Sequence record: OP310983.1
Reading direction: 5' to 3' (one strand)
DNA length: 64,000 bases
Every line of letters begins with the position of its first letter. Within the stretch, counting starts at the first letter, position 1. Below are positions 12,737-61,596 of this stretch, one piece after another. A program made the translations under genes and the position numbers. The notes beneath the pieces are model-generated. The model saw only the letters and a list, made by a program, of their open reading frames with translations. It did no database searches and was not told the DNA's origin.

Positions 12737-14179
12737 CGTTATGTTCAATAGAGTGCGTTAAACTCTATTCGCACCATTACGTGCAGCTCTAGCTCTCACT
12801 AGAAGACCAGACTATATCTTCACCTACAGCATCATCTGTTTAGGTGCTCTCCATTTCGGATCACTTGATCCTACGGGGCGCAACCCCCTAGTCGTTGAAC
12901 GTTCCACATATTACAGTTAAGTAATTTAGCGGCTTCGCTGCTGATTGTCTCTACCTAATCATTTTCAAACATTCGCACTTACTGTTTCCAGTTATGCTGT
13001 AGTTGATTAGTCTAACGAGAGTTTCCAGCAATTAGAAGAGTAAAACATATTCATTTCGGAATATGTGGACTTATGTACTTTACTGCATAATTTCTAAAAA
13101 TACAACCATGTTCAGATTTCCTTAGATGATAACCTAAGCAACCTGGTGTGACATTGAAAAACTCGGCGGCTTCCTTCAGTGAGTTTTTTATTAATACAGC
13201 TTCAGATTCTAATGATTCAATATGAATTCTGCGATGAGTTTCCACATACACGAGATTATCATTATTCCATGGTGTATCATCATCTTCGTATTTAAACTGT
13301 AATGATTGATTGTAAACAAGATTACTATTTTTAGTTAAACGTAATCTTAAAGTTTCACCATCTATACCAATTTCTCGGGCGCATTGTTCTATGCTGTAAT
13401 AACGAGTTATATTGGTAGTTATAAGGTCTCTGACCAAAACTGCTTTGGAATTATGAAGTCCATTGATGTGCGCATGCTCGCAATTTCTTTTACGGGTAGC
13501 CCATTCAAGGTTTGTTAAATCATTACAATCTTTAATTGCATTTAAATGATTCACATCAAGTGAATCAACATTACCTGGATATTTTAAGAAAGCTAGACTA
13601 AGAAGACGGTGCATTCCTACAATTGTACGTTTACCTACATCCGGCTGAACACCATACATCAGATAACCATCTTCATTCATGTATGGTGAGAGATGATTAC
13701 TGTTAACAGTGCTAAGTACTTGTCCAGCGCGATTAATCATGTATCTACTATATCCGGGAATATAGCAGTATTCTTTTATTAATGGATGAGTAAGTTCACC
13801 TTCAGGACACGCCCAAATAAAATTGGTTAGGCGATGATTACTTTTATTACCGTCTTTGTAAATAACGCGTAGTTTATGTAGTAACCGCATTGGTAATATG
13901 CAGTTTCTATACGTAACACCTAATACAACAGATAGTGACAAACCGTCAAACCATTCACCTGTTGTATGTTCAGGAAAAAGATGTTCGCCTTCATCACTAA
14001 CCATTGTGGTCAGTACGCGTTTACTTATACTTTCTCTAGCGATACCACTACAGCTGATTTCATACATGCCACCAGTATGTGGTATCTTTTTAAATCCTGG
14101 ATTTTCAATGAATTTTTTTAACATGGTTGTTATCCTATTTATTTCCTATAGGATAACTAGATATACAGTATTACAATTA
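12737..14179 (-). mobile_element. Group I intron (1443 nt) with HNH endonuclease in the RNAP beta-prime gene
   Basis: 5' exon ends in U (GAT), intron ends in G; core elements AATTGCTGGAAA (P), AATCAGCAG (Q), TTCAACGACTA (R), AAGATATAGTCT (S) at about 12800-13035; splicing restores GADFDGD. Confidence 0.93.
13051..14124 (-). CDS. Intron-encoded HNH homing endonuclease (gp179-like)
   Basis: NUMOD4-like segments, HRL...DVNHLNAIKDCNDLTNLEW...N HNH motif, C-terminal NUMOD1/IENR1-like HTH repeats. Confidence 0.9.
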   Translation of the reverse strand: MLKKFIENPGFKKIPHTGGMYEISCSGIARESISKRVLTTMVSDEGEHLFPEHTTGEWFDGLSLSVVLGVTYRNCILPMRLLHKLRVIYKDGNKSNHRLTNFIWACPEGELTHPLIKEYCYIPGYSRYMINRAGQVLSTVNSNHLSPYMNEDGYLMYGVQPDVGKRTIVGMHRLLSLAFLKYPGNVDSLDVNHLNAIKDCNDLTNLEWATRKRNCEHAHINGLHNSKAVLVRDLITTNITRYYSIEQCAREIGIDGETLRLRLTKNSNLVYNQSLQFKYEDDDTPWNNDNLVYVETHRRIHIESLESEAVLIKNSLKEAAEFFNVTPGCLGYHLRKSEHGCIFRNYAVKYISPHIPK

Positions 14180-57935: not shown

Positions 57936-58136
57936 ATGGATCGTCTTGATGAAAGAATCGCATTCAGTGTAAAGTCGTACAAAATTTTCAATGCTCTCTC
58001 CCATGGCCGAGTTCGGGCATTGATTATTAACTTTAAAGATGGTAAGGGTACGATCGTATCTATTAGTGATGATCGCCGCCATGATAAACATCTCTGGTTC
58101 AACTGTGGACTAGTAGACAATCCGAGGATCAAGTAA
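57936..58136 (+). CDS. Small hypothetical protein
   Basis: 66 aa, TAATG coupling to thyA. Confidence 0.65.
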   Translation: MDRLDERIAFSVKSYKIFNALSHGRVRALIINFKDGKGTIVSISDDRRHDKHLWFNCGLVDNPRIK

Positions 58137-59299
58137 TGGAACAATATCTTAATTCAATCCGTTTAGTTAAAGAACACGGTGTACATAAAGGTGACCGTAC
58201 TGGTACTGGTACTCAGAGCATGTTTGGTCAACAAGAACGTTATAGTCTGCGTAATAATCGGCTACCAGTTGTAACCACCAAGAAGATTCATCTAGCTTCT
58301 GTAATTCATGAATTGTTCTGGATGCTGTCAGGTGATACTAAGGTGGATTACCTGATCGCTAATGGTGTACGCATCTGGAACGAGTGGGTTAAACCTGAAA
58401 CCGCAGTATATGAGCCGATGACCGATGAGGCCGTTCTTAAAGCAGTAACTGCCCTCATTGGTGCCCCATTCGTAATGTACTTACATTGTATGAACGATGA
58501 CTCTACTCCATTCATTGAGACTGTAGCGGAATTCGAGTCGGGTATGACTCCAGAGACTATTCAGGCCTTCTGGGATGAATATCCAGTTAACCGTGAGGAA
58601 ATCCAATACATCATTGGAGTTAGCGTAACGTCGTGGAATAGGTTCGCTACTGAAGGGTTCGATGAAGCCAAAAATCCTGAAGGTATTCGTGCTGAATATA
58701 ACAAGCGACTGTATCGTGCTTTGATGCATAAAGAACCAGAGCGTCTGGTCGGCGGCGATCTAGGTGCTGTTTACGGTAAGACATGGCGTAATCTTGAAGA
58801 CACTCGTGTAATCCCTAAATATGAGTGGTTTGATTATGAGAAGCGTGGTTTTGACTTCGTGGCGGATATCCCAGGTACAACCATGGAAACCGATCGATGC
58901 GTGGTTACTCGACGTATCGACCAAATCCAAGACATCATCGATCAACTTCGCACCAACCCGGATTCTCGTCGGATCATTGTTTGTGCATGGGCGCCACATC
59001 TTATTGATGAGCAGGCACTCCCACCTTGCCACGCATTTATTCAGTTCTGGACCCGTGAACTGACCGTAGATGAACGAGTGCAAGCTCTAGACCAAACCCA
59101 GTTCGAAGCTGATGCTTATCATGATAAGATTAGTGGTGAGATTACTCGTGGTCAACCTCCATTCGATAGTGCTGAGCAGGTTAAAGCACTTCTGCGTGTC
59201 TGTCGTGGTTATGAAAAGGCTACAGATGAAGCAGTAGTAGAATGGCTGGATCAACATGGTGTTCCTAAACGTGCATTGAGTTGCCAACTCTACCAGCGT
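58136..59299 (+). CDS. thyA: Thymidylate synthase, exon 1
   Basis: DRTGTGT, LPVVTTKKIH, GDLGAVYG, ALPPCHAFIQF, LSCQLYQR then in-frame TAA. Confidence 0.95.
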
Positions 59300-60389
59300 T
59301 AAATACTAGCGCCTTCTAGGAGCAATCCTAGTCGAATAACCTATCTAAACGGGGAAACTCTCTATGAGACAATCCCGTGCTAAATTGACTACGGTCATAA
59401 ATGCCTAACGACTATCGAAACCACTCTGAGAAGAGGAAGGGAGTAGAGTAGGACCAAGTGGTCCGAAAAGGTAGGGGTCTCTTTTTAAGAGATCGTGATA
59501 TAGTCTGTCCTGCATGGAGACATGCAGCGGTTTACTTAATGACTCCGCCAGATAAGGAGGGTGTTATTAATGACGTAGCTTATGTGTATTGCCTATTCAC
59601 CAAAGAAGGAAAGGTATATGTCGGAAGTGCGCGAGATTTAGTTAAGCGCGTTCAACGACATTTCAGAGACCTTAGTAATTCCAAGCACCATAACTACCCA
59701 TTACAACAAGAATACGATAACGGTGAAAGATTCTCGTTAAAGTACTATCGTTGTGAAAGTCGGGAATCAGCATTTACACTCGAACAGATGTGGATAACCA
59801 AGCATGAAGAAGAAGGTAACCTTCTTAATATTGGTAGACACTCCAAGGGTGGTGATAACTTAACCAGGCATAACCTCAAAGAACAAATCATCGAGAAGCG
59901 GAGTGATACAATACGTATCAGACTTGATGAGATTGGAGCCGAGGCTCGTCAGGAAAAGTATGGTCGACCAGGTGAGCAGAATGGGATGTATGGTCGTACT
60001 CACACAGAAGAAGTTAAGGTAGCTCTATCCGAGTTACACACGGGTAACACTTACCGTCTTGGCATTAAAGCTAGTGATGAGACAAGAGCCAGGATGTCGG
60101 AGATAGCTTCTCAGAGAACAGGCGAACGTAATCCATTCTACGGTAAAACACATTCCGAAGAAACCAGAAAAAAGTTGGCGGATAACAAACGCGGTATAAA
60201 GCCAACTAACTCAAACAAACTTGAAGTGGACGGTGTTGTTTATTTATCCCAGGCCGATGCAGCTAAGGCTCTCGGAGTATCACAGGGTACAATAACATAC
60301 CGAATTAACAGCAAGAATCCAAAGTATTCTGGTTATAAAGTCATTTAAGTAAACGGCTCAGGATTAACGACCCTGGGTGAACATAAGAG
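59300..60389 (+). mobile_element. T4 td-like group I intron (1090 nt) with GIY-YIG endonuclease
   Basis: CTATCTAAACGGGGAA..CTCTCTA..AGACAATCCCGTGCTAAATTG, AAATGCCTAACGACTATC, GATATAGTCTG..CTGCATGG.GACATGCAG, GATTAACGACC...TGAACATAA..G; exon ends in U, intron ends in G. Confidence 0.93.
59539..60348 (+). CDS. Intron-encoded GIY-YIG homing endonuclease (start uncertain)
   Basis: AYVY...VYVGS...R...H...E...LN; NUMOD3 repeats GEQNGMYGRTHTEE and GERNPFYGKTHSEET; C-terminal HTH. Confidence 0.88.
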   Translation: MTPPDKEGVINDVAYVYCLFTKEGKVYVGSARDLVKRVQRHFRDLSNSKHHNYPLQQEYDNGERFSLKYYRCESRESAFTLEQMWITKHEEEGNLLNIGRHSKGGDNLTRHNLKEQIIEKRSDTIRIRLDEIGAEARQEKYGRPGEQNGMYGRTHTEEVKVALSELHTGNTYRLGIKASDETRARMSEIASQRTGERNPFYGKTHSEETRKKLADNKRGIKPTNSNKLEVDGVVYLSQADAAKALGVSQGTITYRINSKNPKYSGYKVI

Positions 60390-60692
60390 AGCGTCGATAC
60401 TTTCTTAGGAAAACCCTTTAACATCACGTTCTATAGTCTGCTGACTCATATGTTAGCTAACCAAATGAATATGATTGCTGAAGAGTTTATCTGGACTGGT
60501 GGTGATGTACATATTTACTCTAACCACCAAGAACAAACTGATCTTCAATTAACTCGTGAACCGAAGGTTCTACCTACCATCCGTTTTAAAGAAGAAGCTA
60601 TTGGTAAAGATATTCGGGAAATTGGTGTAGATGATTTTGTTATCGAGAACTATGAATATCATCCACACATTGCTGGTAAAGTTGCTGTTTAA
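60390..60692 (+). CDS. thyA: Thymidylate synthase, exon 2
   Basis: AGC GTC GAT ACT TTC TTA GGA = SVDTFLGKPFNITFYSLL...GDVHIYSNH...KVAV; spliced product 488 aa. Confidence 0.95.
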   Translation, partial: SVDTFLGKPFNITFYSLLTHMLANQMNMIAEEFIWTGGDVHIYSNHQEQTDLQLTREPKVLPTIRFKEEAIGKDIREIGVDDFVIENYEYHPHIAGKVAV

Positions 60693-60717: not shown

Positions 60718-60774
60718 TTTATTTTCCCTTGGTGGAATAATGAACTTCTTGCTTTTTGAAAAGGTAGGCGAATA

Positions 60775-61596
60775 ATGGATCCACGTCATCCGGTTAGTGA
60801 TGAGATGCGTTCAGTCATTGATACAGAACTAACTAGAATTGAACAGAAGTATGGTGTAAAGGTTATTTATGCCTGTGAGTCCGGTAGTCGTGGTTGGGGT
60901 TTCGCTTCTACTAATAGTGATTATGATGTTCGCTTCATTTATGTTAACCATCCGAGACATTACGTTCGTGTGGATAATAAAGCACGTGATACTATTGAAG
61001 AGATGGTGTCTAAAGAACTAGACCTTGCTGGTTGGAACATCACTAAGACTCTTCAACTTGCTTACAAATCTAATCCCACTCTCTTGGAATGGCTAAACTC
61101 CCCAATCGTTTACCGTAAGGTTGATTGTGACTACAAGTTAATCCGTGATGCTGCACTAAAGCACTTCATTCCTGAATCGAGTTATATGCATTATATCTCG
61201 ATGGCCAAACAAACCAAAATGCGTTGGTTGTCAGATGAGAAGACCCGGATGAAGAAGTACTTCTATTCTCTTCGTCCTCTGTTGGCTGCAATGTGGGTCC
61301 GTGAAAGTCTGGAACATCCACCTATGGTATTCCATGACCTACTACCTATTCTATCAGATCCTATCCTTTATAAACGTATCCAAGAACTGGTTAATGATAA
61401 GGTTGAGTCTACTGAACAGGATCTGATAGATCGTTGTCCTATTTTAGATCAGTTCATAGATTTCCAATTGGGTCGTGAGAAACCAGACTTTGGTAAATAT
61501 AAACGTCCGGACATCTATGCACTTACCGACCTAGCCTGGCATTTTGTTGACCAGTACAAGCTAGATACATTCGTAAAACTACCTGGTACCGAATGA
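60775..61596 (+). CDS. Pol-beta-superfamily nucleotidyltransferase (YcgL/RlaP-like)
   Basis: YACESGSRGWGFASTNSDYDVRFIY, DLAGW, SNPTLLEWLNSPIVY, KKYFYSLRPLLA. Confidence 0.88.
   Translation: MDPRHPVSDEMRSVIDTELTRIEQKYGVKVIYACESGSRGWGFASTNSDYDVRFIYVNHPRHYVRVDNKARDTIEEMVSKELDLAGWNITKTLQLAYKSNPTLLEWLNSPIVYRKVDCDYKLIRDAALKHFIPESSYMHYISMAKQTKMRWLSDEKTRMKKYFYSLRPLLAAMWVRESLEHPPMVFHDLLPILSDPILYKRIQELVNDKVESTEQDLIDRCPILDQFIDFQLGREKPDFGKYKRPDIYALTDLAWHFVDQYKLDTFVKLPGTE

Follow-up and report, generated by a model that had tools for sequence, protein, structure and literature searches.

A putatively mobile td-family group I intron with a GIY-YIG endonuclease gene interrupts thyA of Phikzvirus phages directly after the active-site arginine codon

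The stretch of DNA analysed here, 64,000 nt of sequence record OP310983.1 (hereafter the window), is part of the 278.8 kb genome of Pseudomonas phage Koomba boorn-mokiny kep-wari Wadjak 1 (genus Phikzvirus; hereafter Wadjak 1), window position 58136 corresponding to record position 182136. It contains a thymidylate synthase gene, thyA, that is interrupted by a group I intron, which in turn contains an open reading frame (ORF) for a homing endonuclease. In the record, two "thymidylate synthase" coding sequences (CDS) are annotated with a "homing endonuclease" between them, and there is no intron feature. Indeed, none of the 11 intron-bearing Phikzvirus records annotates an intron; they list two thymidylate synthase fragments together with a homing endonuclease or a hypothetical protein. 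The second annotated thymidylate synthase CDS begins at an internal methionine, 20 codons inside exon 2. The parts of the gene are as follows:

58136-59299, plus strand: thyA exon 1, 388 codons ending in TAC CAG CGT (Y Q R); from the ORF list and Pfam
59300-60389, plus strand: group I intron, 1090 nt, ending in a 3'-terminal G (guanosine); from Rfam and the boundaries of intron-less alleles
59539-60348, plus strand: homing endonuclease ORF, 269 amino acids (aa), with GIY-YIG, two NUMOD3 and an I-TevI-type helix-turn-helix; from Pfam and the Protein Data Bank (PDB)
60390-60692, plus strand: thyA exon 2, 100 codons and a stop, beginning AGC GTC GAT (S V D); from Pfam

The intron boundaries were set by comparison with intron-less alleles. 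In phiKZ and other Phikzvirus phages without the intron, thyA is exactly 1467 nt long, that is 1164 + 303, and the joined exons of the window encode a 488-aa ThyA whose single difference from the protein of the intron-less phage fnug is C390V; on these grounds the intron is placed at 59300-60389 (1090 nt). Exon 2 is in frame, opening with AGC GTC GAT ACT TTC TTA GGA and closing with a stop at 60692. The Pfam profile Thymidylat_synt is covered at positions 1-154 by exon 1 and at positions 169-266 by exon 2, and the exon junction falls, in frame, inside the catalytic Arg-Ser-x-Asp motif. Splicing would take place at U59299 and G60389 and yield a thymidylate synthase of full length.

An earlier reading of the DNA (the original prediction) had called the intron td-like, and this is borne out by two comparisons. 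When the whole window was scanned, RF00028 of Rfam (gathering score 50 bits) matched 59290-59527 on the plus strand with 69.4 bits (E 1.6e-15), covering model positions 1-253, which is the full model. With the ORFs removed, the ribozyme is identical to that of the T4 td intron at 193 of 258 aligned columns (75%), in long identical blocks. Bacillus phage Bobb shares 216 of 283 columns, and the introns of Bobb and of Bacillus phage LY2 are slightly closer than td. The fold was derived from the Rfam alignment and an RNAalifold consensus of five introns of the same architecture, namely those of the window, of Phikzvirus phage SL2 and of three metagenomic contigs (L023, L025 and L027) that are described below. 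Its elements are:

59296-59312, plus strand: P1, exon GCGU and intron UA paired with the internal guide UAGCGC; from the consensus fold
59313-59529, plus strand: ribozyme core with P2, P3, P4, P5, P6a, P7.1, P7.2, P8, the P7 strands and P9; from the Rfam alignment and the consensus fold
59530-59538, plus strand: 5' arm of P9.1, GTTTACTTA, a perfect 9-bp complement of 60346-60354
60346-60354, plus strand: 3' arm of P9.1, TAAGTAAAC, its first three bases being the ORF stop TAA (60346-60348)
60356-60378, plus strand: P9.2 hairpin, 7 bp, with compensatory changes in four of seven pairs among relatives

In P1, U59299 stands opposite G as the wobble pair at the 5' splice site, and the last base of the intron is G60389. 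P6a is a short closed hairpin of 3-4 bp (59386-59397) with no ORF inside; the P7.1 and P7.2 hairpins lie at 59424-59435 and 59451-59464, and P9 at 59510-59527. Compensatory double changes are found in P6a, P7.1, P7.2, P8, P9.1 and P9.2 of the consensus fold. Subgroup IA2 of the group I introns (the td, nrdD and Bacillus phage type) is recognised by two extra hairpins, P7.1 and P7.2, that lie between P7 and P3, and by P9.1 and P9.2; the window intron has all of these, with compensatory changes. Its final two helices, the 59530/60354 stem and the 60356-60378 hairpin, correspond by position to td P9.1 and P9.2. T4 td has the same loop region, AUUAACGAC, in its P9.2 and almost the same 3' end.

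The ORF follows the core and is closed by the 9-bp stem, in the P9 region and not in P6a, as had been proposed; the arms are perfectly complementary and the pairing is conserved. A 9-bp inverted repeat is expected about twice by chance in 1.1 kb (our own arithmetic) and is not significant by itself. What makes the P9.1 stem credible is that it directly abuts the ORF and that relatives have kept it: SL2, L023, L025 and L027 all possess the stem, one of its pairs having undergone a compensatory change from C-G to U-A, and in the consensus fold it has 7-9 bp. The pairing extends to arms of 14 nt (59526-59539 and 60345-60358, 93%), and the ATG of the ORF starts at 59539, which is the final base of the 14-nt 5' arm, directly past the 9-bp stem. 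An unrelated perfect inverted repeat of 10 nt (59424-59433 and 60107-60116), running from P7.1 to the middle of the ORF, is most likely due to chance and offers a yardstick for P9.1.

The family of the endonuclease was read from several matches. Pfam gave NUMOD3 (1.3e-16, 60.7 bits, cut-off 20.4), I-TevI_DNA-bd (4.2e-13, 49.4 bits, cut-off 27) and an N-terminal GIY-YIG (4.6e-9, 36.9 bits, cut-off 22.6). Among PDB structures the protein matches the DNA-binding domain (1I3J, E 1.9e-13) and the catalytic domain (1MK0, E 3.7e-6) of I-TevI, to which it is 33% identical (E 2e-42). The catalytic Tyr, Tyr, Arg, His, Glu and Asn are all accounted for, with YVY, VYVG, KRVQRH, LEQMW and LLNIG aligning with the I-TevI residues (the Glu by eye). 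No zinc finger is found in the linker, there being no Cys pairs at the location of the I-TevI CSKC. An I-TevII-like enzyme, considered for the loop position shared with the T4 nrdD intron, was rejected (22% identity, E 0.011). The SL2 copy differs from that of the window by 10 synonymous and 4 non-synonymous changes, a ratio that indicates purifying selection on the ORF. In a maximum-likelihood tree, five P9.1-type enzymes form one clade (97/97), apart from both the I-TevI clade and the P6a-type enzymes of introns at the same site. This separate clade fits the independent pairing of intron and endonuclease that had been put forward, with the qualification that it represents a lineage of jumbo-phage introns and is not unique to the window.

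The start codon of the ORF is uncertain, with ATG 59539, ATT 59566 and GTG 59584 as candidates. In the leader (59539-59590), a hairpin that the metagenomic relatives have also kept pairs up AAGGAGG (59554-59560), a strong Shine-Dalgarno-like sequence, past which comes an ATG-NNN-TAG of two codons in another frame. Besides ATG 59539, two possible in-frame starts are conserved: ATT 59566, which lies 5 nt past the Shine-Dalgarno sequence, and GTG 59584. This leader suggests restrained translation, as is known for I-TevI.

The insertion site was then compared with those of known thyA introns. The T4 td gene reads CAA CGC TCA GTA GAT GTT TTC TTG GGT and then the intron, and the site in the window, after the Arg codon CGT, is 7 codons or 21 nt upstream of it. 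The exon boundaries and the T4 td sequence thus agree with the predicted insertion between CAG CGT and AGC, 21 nt from the td position. I-TevI nicks within CAACG (PMC5009752), which by our count occupies -27 to -23 of the td site, and the window site is 2 nt downstream of the I-TevI top-strand nick; the predicted closeness of the insertion to the I-TevI cut in the Gln-Arg codons likewise holds.

The published I-BmoI substrate has a critical G-2, a motif GCCCG ending there, A+4/A+5, a purine anchor G+7 and A+8, and I-BmoI and I-TevI cleave the same positions of homologous DNA while their introns lie at different positions of the gene (PMC2853131, PMC3664794, PMC5009752). With the G at -23 for I-TevI and at -2 for I-BmoI, the two insertion sites are 21 nt apart. 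We placed the I-BmoI site by this substrate numbering and the sequence of Bacillus phage SPbetaL1, whose thy junction GCCCGT/AGTAATGAT (the slash marks the insertion site here and below) matches the I-BmoI numbering base for base to +8. In the window junction, CGT/AGC GTC GAT, G-2 belongs to the Arg codon and G+7 to the Asp codon, as in the introns of the I-BmoI site. Because the SPbetaL1 junction fits the I-BmoI numbering and the window shares the Arg/Ser position of SPbetaL1, the window intron, on this numbering, occupies the site of I-BmoI (Bacillus mojavensis thyA), which is another site than that of td and is not new. The original prediction had taken td and I-BmoI as sharing one usual site and had set the insertion apart from it. 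The td half of that distinction stands; the other half does not, and neither does the idea of an uncatalogued site, which is occupied in six cultured phages and three metagenomic contigs besides. The original work on I-BmoI and beta22 reportedly gives the same 21-nt offset from td. The thyA intron of Bacillus phage beta22 (reportedly described by Bechhofer in 1994) probably lies at this site as well.

The six cultured phages were found by a translated search of phage genomes with the endonuclease, followed by inspection of each locus. Related introns are present at the codon-exact Arg/Ser site of thyA in the jumbo phages Erwinia RisingSun, Dickeya JA29 and Vibrio phiKT1028, and in the Bacillus phages Bobb, LY2 and SPbetaL1. 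An internal guide GCGC facing exon GCGU is common to RisingSun, JA29, Bobb, phiKT1028 and LY2; in SPbetaL1 the exon CCCGU is matched by a guide GCGG, a compensatory change. The ORF is located in P6a, as in td, in RisingSun, JA29, Bobb, phiKT1028 and LY2, in P8 in SPbetaL1 and in P9.1 in the window. In SPbetaL1 it lies between the P8 arms ATCCTA and TAGGAT, and the loop therefore differs from that of the window. Introns with a core split by a P6a ORF (T4 td, RisingSun, Bobb, LY2, phiKT1028) are missed by Rfam, and their ORFs were placed by eye from conserved blocks. Closer relatives of the endonuclease were sought among 5.8 billion proteins, and the metagenomic jumbo-phage contigs L023 (310 kb), L025 and L027 were found to have an intron at the same site, with a contiguous core and the ORF in P9.1. 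An ORF in P9.1 is in itself not new, judging from these alignments: the T4 nrdD intron is arranged in this way, and the full architecture is common to the three contigs. A literature search found no description of a thyA intron in the phiKZ group. One ribozyme family at one site, with its ORF in three loops (P6a, P8 and P9.1), is a clear illustration that introns and endonuclease genes pair independently.

A survey of thyA across Phikzvirus, which the original prediction had called for, gave a presence/absence pattern. The intron is carried by 11 phages (Wadjak 1, OMKO1, fMGyn-Pae01, SL2, KEN51, PA02, NK1, T2P, U1B, U5 and phi9_PA9) and is absent, with exact boundaries, from about 34. Over its 1090 nt, the intron of Wadjak 1 differs from those of T2P and NK1 at no position, from those of KEN51 and OMKO1 at 1-2 and from that of SL2 at 23; the thyA exons of these phages differ at 272-441 of 1467 aligned positions (up to 30%) and fall into three length classes. 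The isolates are of distant origin (Wadjak 1 from Australia, T2P from India, NK1 from Japan, OMKO1 from the USA). In sequence comparison, this presence/absence polymorphism, together with an intron far less diverged than its exons, is the signature of horizontal spread and points to recent homing. This comparative evidence for recent homing is what is new here.

Next to the insertion site, the exons themselves carry a trace of the transfer. Between 53136 and 59292 the window and intron-less fnug differ by one mismatch in 6157 nt (99.98%), and the identity ends 8 nt before the site. From -7 to +6, all intron-bearing alleles are set apart from all intron-less ones at 10 of 13 bases (CTACCAGCGT/AGCGTC and CTATCAAAGA/TCTTGT, respectively):

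59293-59299, plus strand: patch on the exon-1 side; -7, -4, -3 and -1 differ from intron-less alleles
60390-60395, plus strand: patch on the exon-2 side; all six bases differ from intron-less alleles, with Cys390 replaced by Val

The changes are synonymous apart from Cys to Val at codon 390 (60393-60395), in the active-site Arg-Ser-Cys/Val-Asp segment. Since the Ser codons AGC and TCT cannot be interconverted by single silent steps, the 13-nt patch is a block replacement travelling with the intron, and the CGU on which P1 depends comes with it. A P10 pairing was considered as the reason why exon-2 bases +1 to +6 travel with the intron and was rejected, as only about 2 bp are possible by eye. 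From +7 to +31, exon 2 does not vary among the Phikzvirus alleles compared, whether or not they carry the intron, and every intron-bearing allele has donor-type sequence from -44 to -1. In terms of co-conversion, the patch always accompanies the intron, the left junction falls within -44 to -8, and the right side is a mosaic for which a donor was not identified.

Several further observations concern this region. Val at the equivalent of codon 390 also occurs in T4 and 201phi2-1 and is presumably tolerated. Intron-less fnug, Wadjak 2 and their relatives have the intron-bearing type of sequence from -44 to -8 and the intron-less type from -7 to +6, a pattern that could go back to the allele that first received the intron or to recombination at a later time; phiKZ and Churi differ from the intron-bearing alleles in both stretches. 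The ThyA of Phikzvirus is unusually long (488 aa), with hypervariable inserts in exon 1 (window 58400-59255) that stop 44 nt upstream of the intron site. Exon 1 comes in lengths of 1164, 1077 and 1071 nt, with very low identity across these classes and conserved flanking catalytic blocks. Downstream of thyA, the window (60740-61172 and 60775-61596) encodes a nucleotidyltransferase, as do SL2, T2P, Churi and others. In fnug its place is taken by unrelated sequence with a PHIKZ236-like gene, and the region beyond is 83% identical to the window; a genus-level mosaic boundary thus adjoins thyA on its downstream side. The sharp right-hand break against fnug was considered as sequence co-transferred with the intron, which we rejected as unproven, fnug simply having a different downstream gene.

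The anatomy and boundaries of the intron, the family of its endonuclease, the polymorphism and the signature of horizontal spread, as laid out by these comparisons, describe an intron of the td/Bacillus thy family directly after the active-site Arg codon of thyA, and we consider it likely that it is mobile and homes in the manner of I-BmoI. The RNA would fold into P1-P9.2 and splice at U59299/G60389, and the P9.1 loop would encode a GIY-YIG homing endonuclease of the I-TevI/I-BmoI type. The C-terminal domain would bind the invariant exon-2 DNA from about +7 (codons D-T-F-L-G-K-P-F-N), placing the N-terminal nuclease to cut both strands at CAAAG (the Gln and Arg codons, -6 to -2) of a co-infecting intron-less allele. 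Repair off the intron-bearing genome would then copy the intron and a short piece of flanking exon, including the CGU for P1. Self-immunity would come from the intron's 3' end, which gives A rather than G at -2 beside the binding site. The activity of the enzyme, the location of its cut and the sparing of self are inferred here by analogy with I-BmoI. The intron does end in AAGAG, making A the base at -2 and leaving the binding region in exon 2 intact (a condition on the sequence only), and the base at -2 of the intron/exon-2 junction is never G in the introns compared. This fits the single-base discrimination described for I-BmoI (PMC3664794).

Some observations weigh against I-BmoI-like homing. 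No Shine-Dalgarno sequence precedes the ATG at 59539, which lies inside the P9.1 stem, and this upstream ATG is out of frame in two relatives (L023 and L025), being in frame only in Phikzvirus and L027. The deep nodes of the endonuclease tree are unresolved, and the window enzyme is no closer to the other same-site endonucleases than to I-TevI; because these nodes do not group the same-site enzymes, the I-BmoI-like geometry is an analogy and not an argument from inheritance. Exon 2 and the next 300 nt of the right flank most resemble SL2, and along 3.6 kb no genome exceeds 97% identity, a value reached by intron-less phages; this flank is a mosaic throughout the genus, and the alleles compared do not allow one donor or one conversion tract to be reconstructed. 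Finally, the PhiPA3 enzyme is kept out of the phiKZ nucleus (PMC11620839), and the window enzyme would, by analogy, have to enter a phage nucleus.

The same element could instead work with the geometry of I-TevI, binding across the insertion site and cutting about 23-25 nt upstream, with the intron splitting the binding site. The match of the DNA-binding domain to 1I3J (E 1.9e-13) is in keeping with this, fnug-type alleles have CATTG, a CNNNG motif, at -26 to -22 (own count), and the donor-type sequence from -44 to -1 in every intron-bearing allele allows co-conversion that far. The would-be binding site is, however, the most variable stretch, with 10 of 13 bases differing between target and donor at the exon junction, and phiKZ-type alleles have no CNNNG at -27 to -22. 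These two points make the arrangement less likely; moreover, the characterised enzyme of this site, I-BmoI, cuts next to it (PMC2853131). We regard I-TevI-type geometry as unlikely, and as somewhat more improbable still the idea that the intron is a passenger whose endonuclease is inactive or unexpressed and which spread by ordinary homologous recombination during co-infection. An ambiguous start codon, a sequestered Shine-Dalgarno-like sequence, a region that is a recombination mosaic throughout and a phage nucleus that may exclude the enzyme (PMC11620839) would all suit a passenger. Intact catalytic motifs, an ORF under purifying selection and a near-identical intron in alleles that are 30% diverged would not, and a junction 8-44 nt from the site, in a genome otherwise 99.98% fnug-like, is what a site-specific break would give. 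At the far end of the scale, the GenBank records, with two thymidylate synthase CDS, a homing endonuclease and no intron, could be taken to mean that a free-standing endonuclease gene has split thyA into two separately translated pieces. We give this almost no credence in view of the full-length group I match, the pairing of P1 with the exon end, the terminal G, the covariation in the helices and the in-frame junction inside the Arg-Ser-x-Asp motif; the second CDS of the annotation, moreover, begins at an internal methionine 20 codons past the start of exon 2.

If I-BmoI-like homing is accepted, it may bear on competition between phages. Competition with a co-infecting intron-less phage is plausible, and PhiPA3 gp210, an HNH nickase from an intron in a virion RNA polymerase gene, sets a precedent in the same phage group; the report on it describes no thyA intron (PMC11620839). 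A stronger proposal, in which the intron is not just a passenger but an active agent of competition among nucleus-forming phiKZ-like phages, its endonuclease being made in the cytoplasm, imported into the phage nucleus of the co-infecting strain and breaking thyA so that the strain is converted or disadvantaged, must be considered doubtful. If it is true, Wadjak 1 and fnug would be a natural intron-plus/intron-minus pair, matched at least across the 6 kb left of the site, in which intron-driven competition and nuclear import could be tested inside a single phage species. The work on PhiPA3 gp210 (PMC11620839) raised the question whether homing endonucleases work across the phage nucleus or within it, and a near-identical intron in isolates from four continents, with an almost exact intron-less match, provides a tractable system for it. 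In addition, the annotation of thyA could be corrected in the Phikzvirus records, including those of phages used in therapy work such as OMKO1.

The window also has a second polymorphic group I intron (12737-14178, minus strand, 1442 nt), with an RF00028 match of 90 bits over 13109-12787 and an HNH endonuclease ORF at 13051-14124, a homologue of phiKZ gp179. It is inserted 185 nt ahead of the stop of the upstream gene for a virion RNA polymerase beta subunit, the homologue of phiKZ gp180. This intron is present in phiKZ, LC, PhiPizzaParty, U1B and U5, and many phages, fnug, SL2 and KTN4 among them, lack it; its gene and site differ from those of the PhiPA3 gp210 intron.

Work on thymidylate synthase genes that harbour mobile group I introns with GIY-YIG endonucleases goes back to the 1980s, and the element described here is itself ordinary. 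Outside Phikzvirus, the best contiguous blastn match is T4 nrdD (69.5%). This intron (also called sunY), with I-TevII, resembles that of the window in its contiguous core and in having the ORF in a stem after P9, with a stem base GTTTA...TAAAC followed by GG; it lies in another host gene, and since I-TevII is only 22% identical (E 0.011) the two ORFs were acquired separately. T4 td shares with the window the gene, a ribozyme that is 75% identical, the P9.2 loop and an enzyme that is 33% identical, and I-TevI cuts in the same Gln-Arg codons (PMC5009752). It differs in being inserted 21 nt downstream, after FLG, in having its ORF in the P6 loop (PMC3073962) and in the zinc finger of the I-TevI linker; the three traits that would make the window intron a td intron, i.e. 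the site, the P6-loop ORF and the zinc finger, are all absent from it.

The six phage introns at the same site have P2 and P7.1/P7.2 sequence blocks in common with the window and encode GIY-YIG endonucleases throughout, but these are 37-41% identical to that of the window and fall outside the P9.1-type clade. Closer relatives are the introns of L023, L025 and L027, with ribozymes that are 79-84% and endonucleases that are 56-69% identical and with a ThyA that has the same long exon 1; these contigs are from uncultivated phages and are not direct donors. The B. mojavensis thyA intron with I-BmoI was reportedly described by Edgell and Shub in 2001. It resides in the same host gene, inserted after the Arg codon by published numbering, in a Bacillus chromosome and not, as here, in a Gram-negative jumbo phage. 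Its nearest proxy among the introns compared is that of SPbetaL1, with the ORF in P8 as opposed to P9.1 and an enzyme that is 38.7% identical to that of the window. The ORF of I-BmoI lies at a different position in its intron from that of I-TevI (PMC5009752). Like the window enzyme, I-BmoI has GIY-YIG and NUMOD3 and no zinc finger (PMC5009752, PMC2853131), in 266 aa compared with 269 aa, and the target features G-2, G+7 and A+8 of I-BmoI are present in intron-less Phikzvirus thyA.

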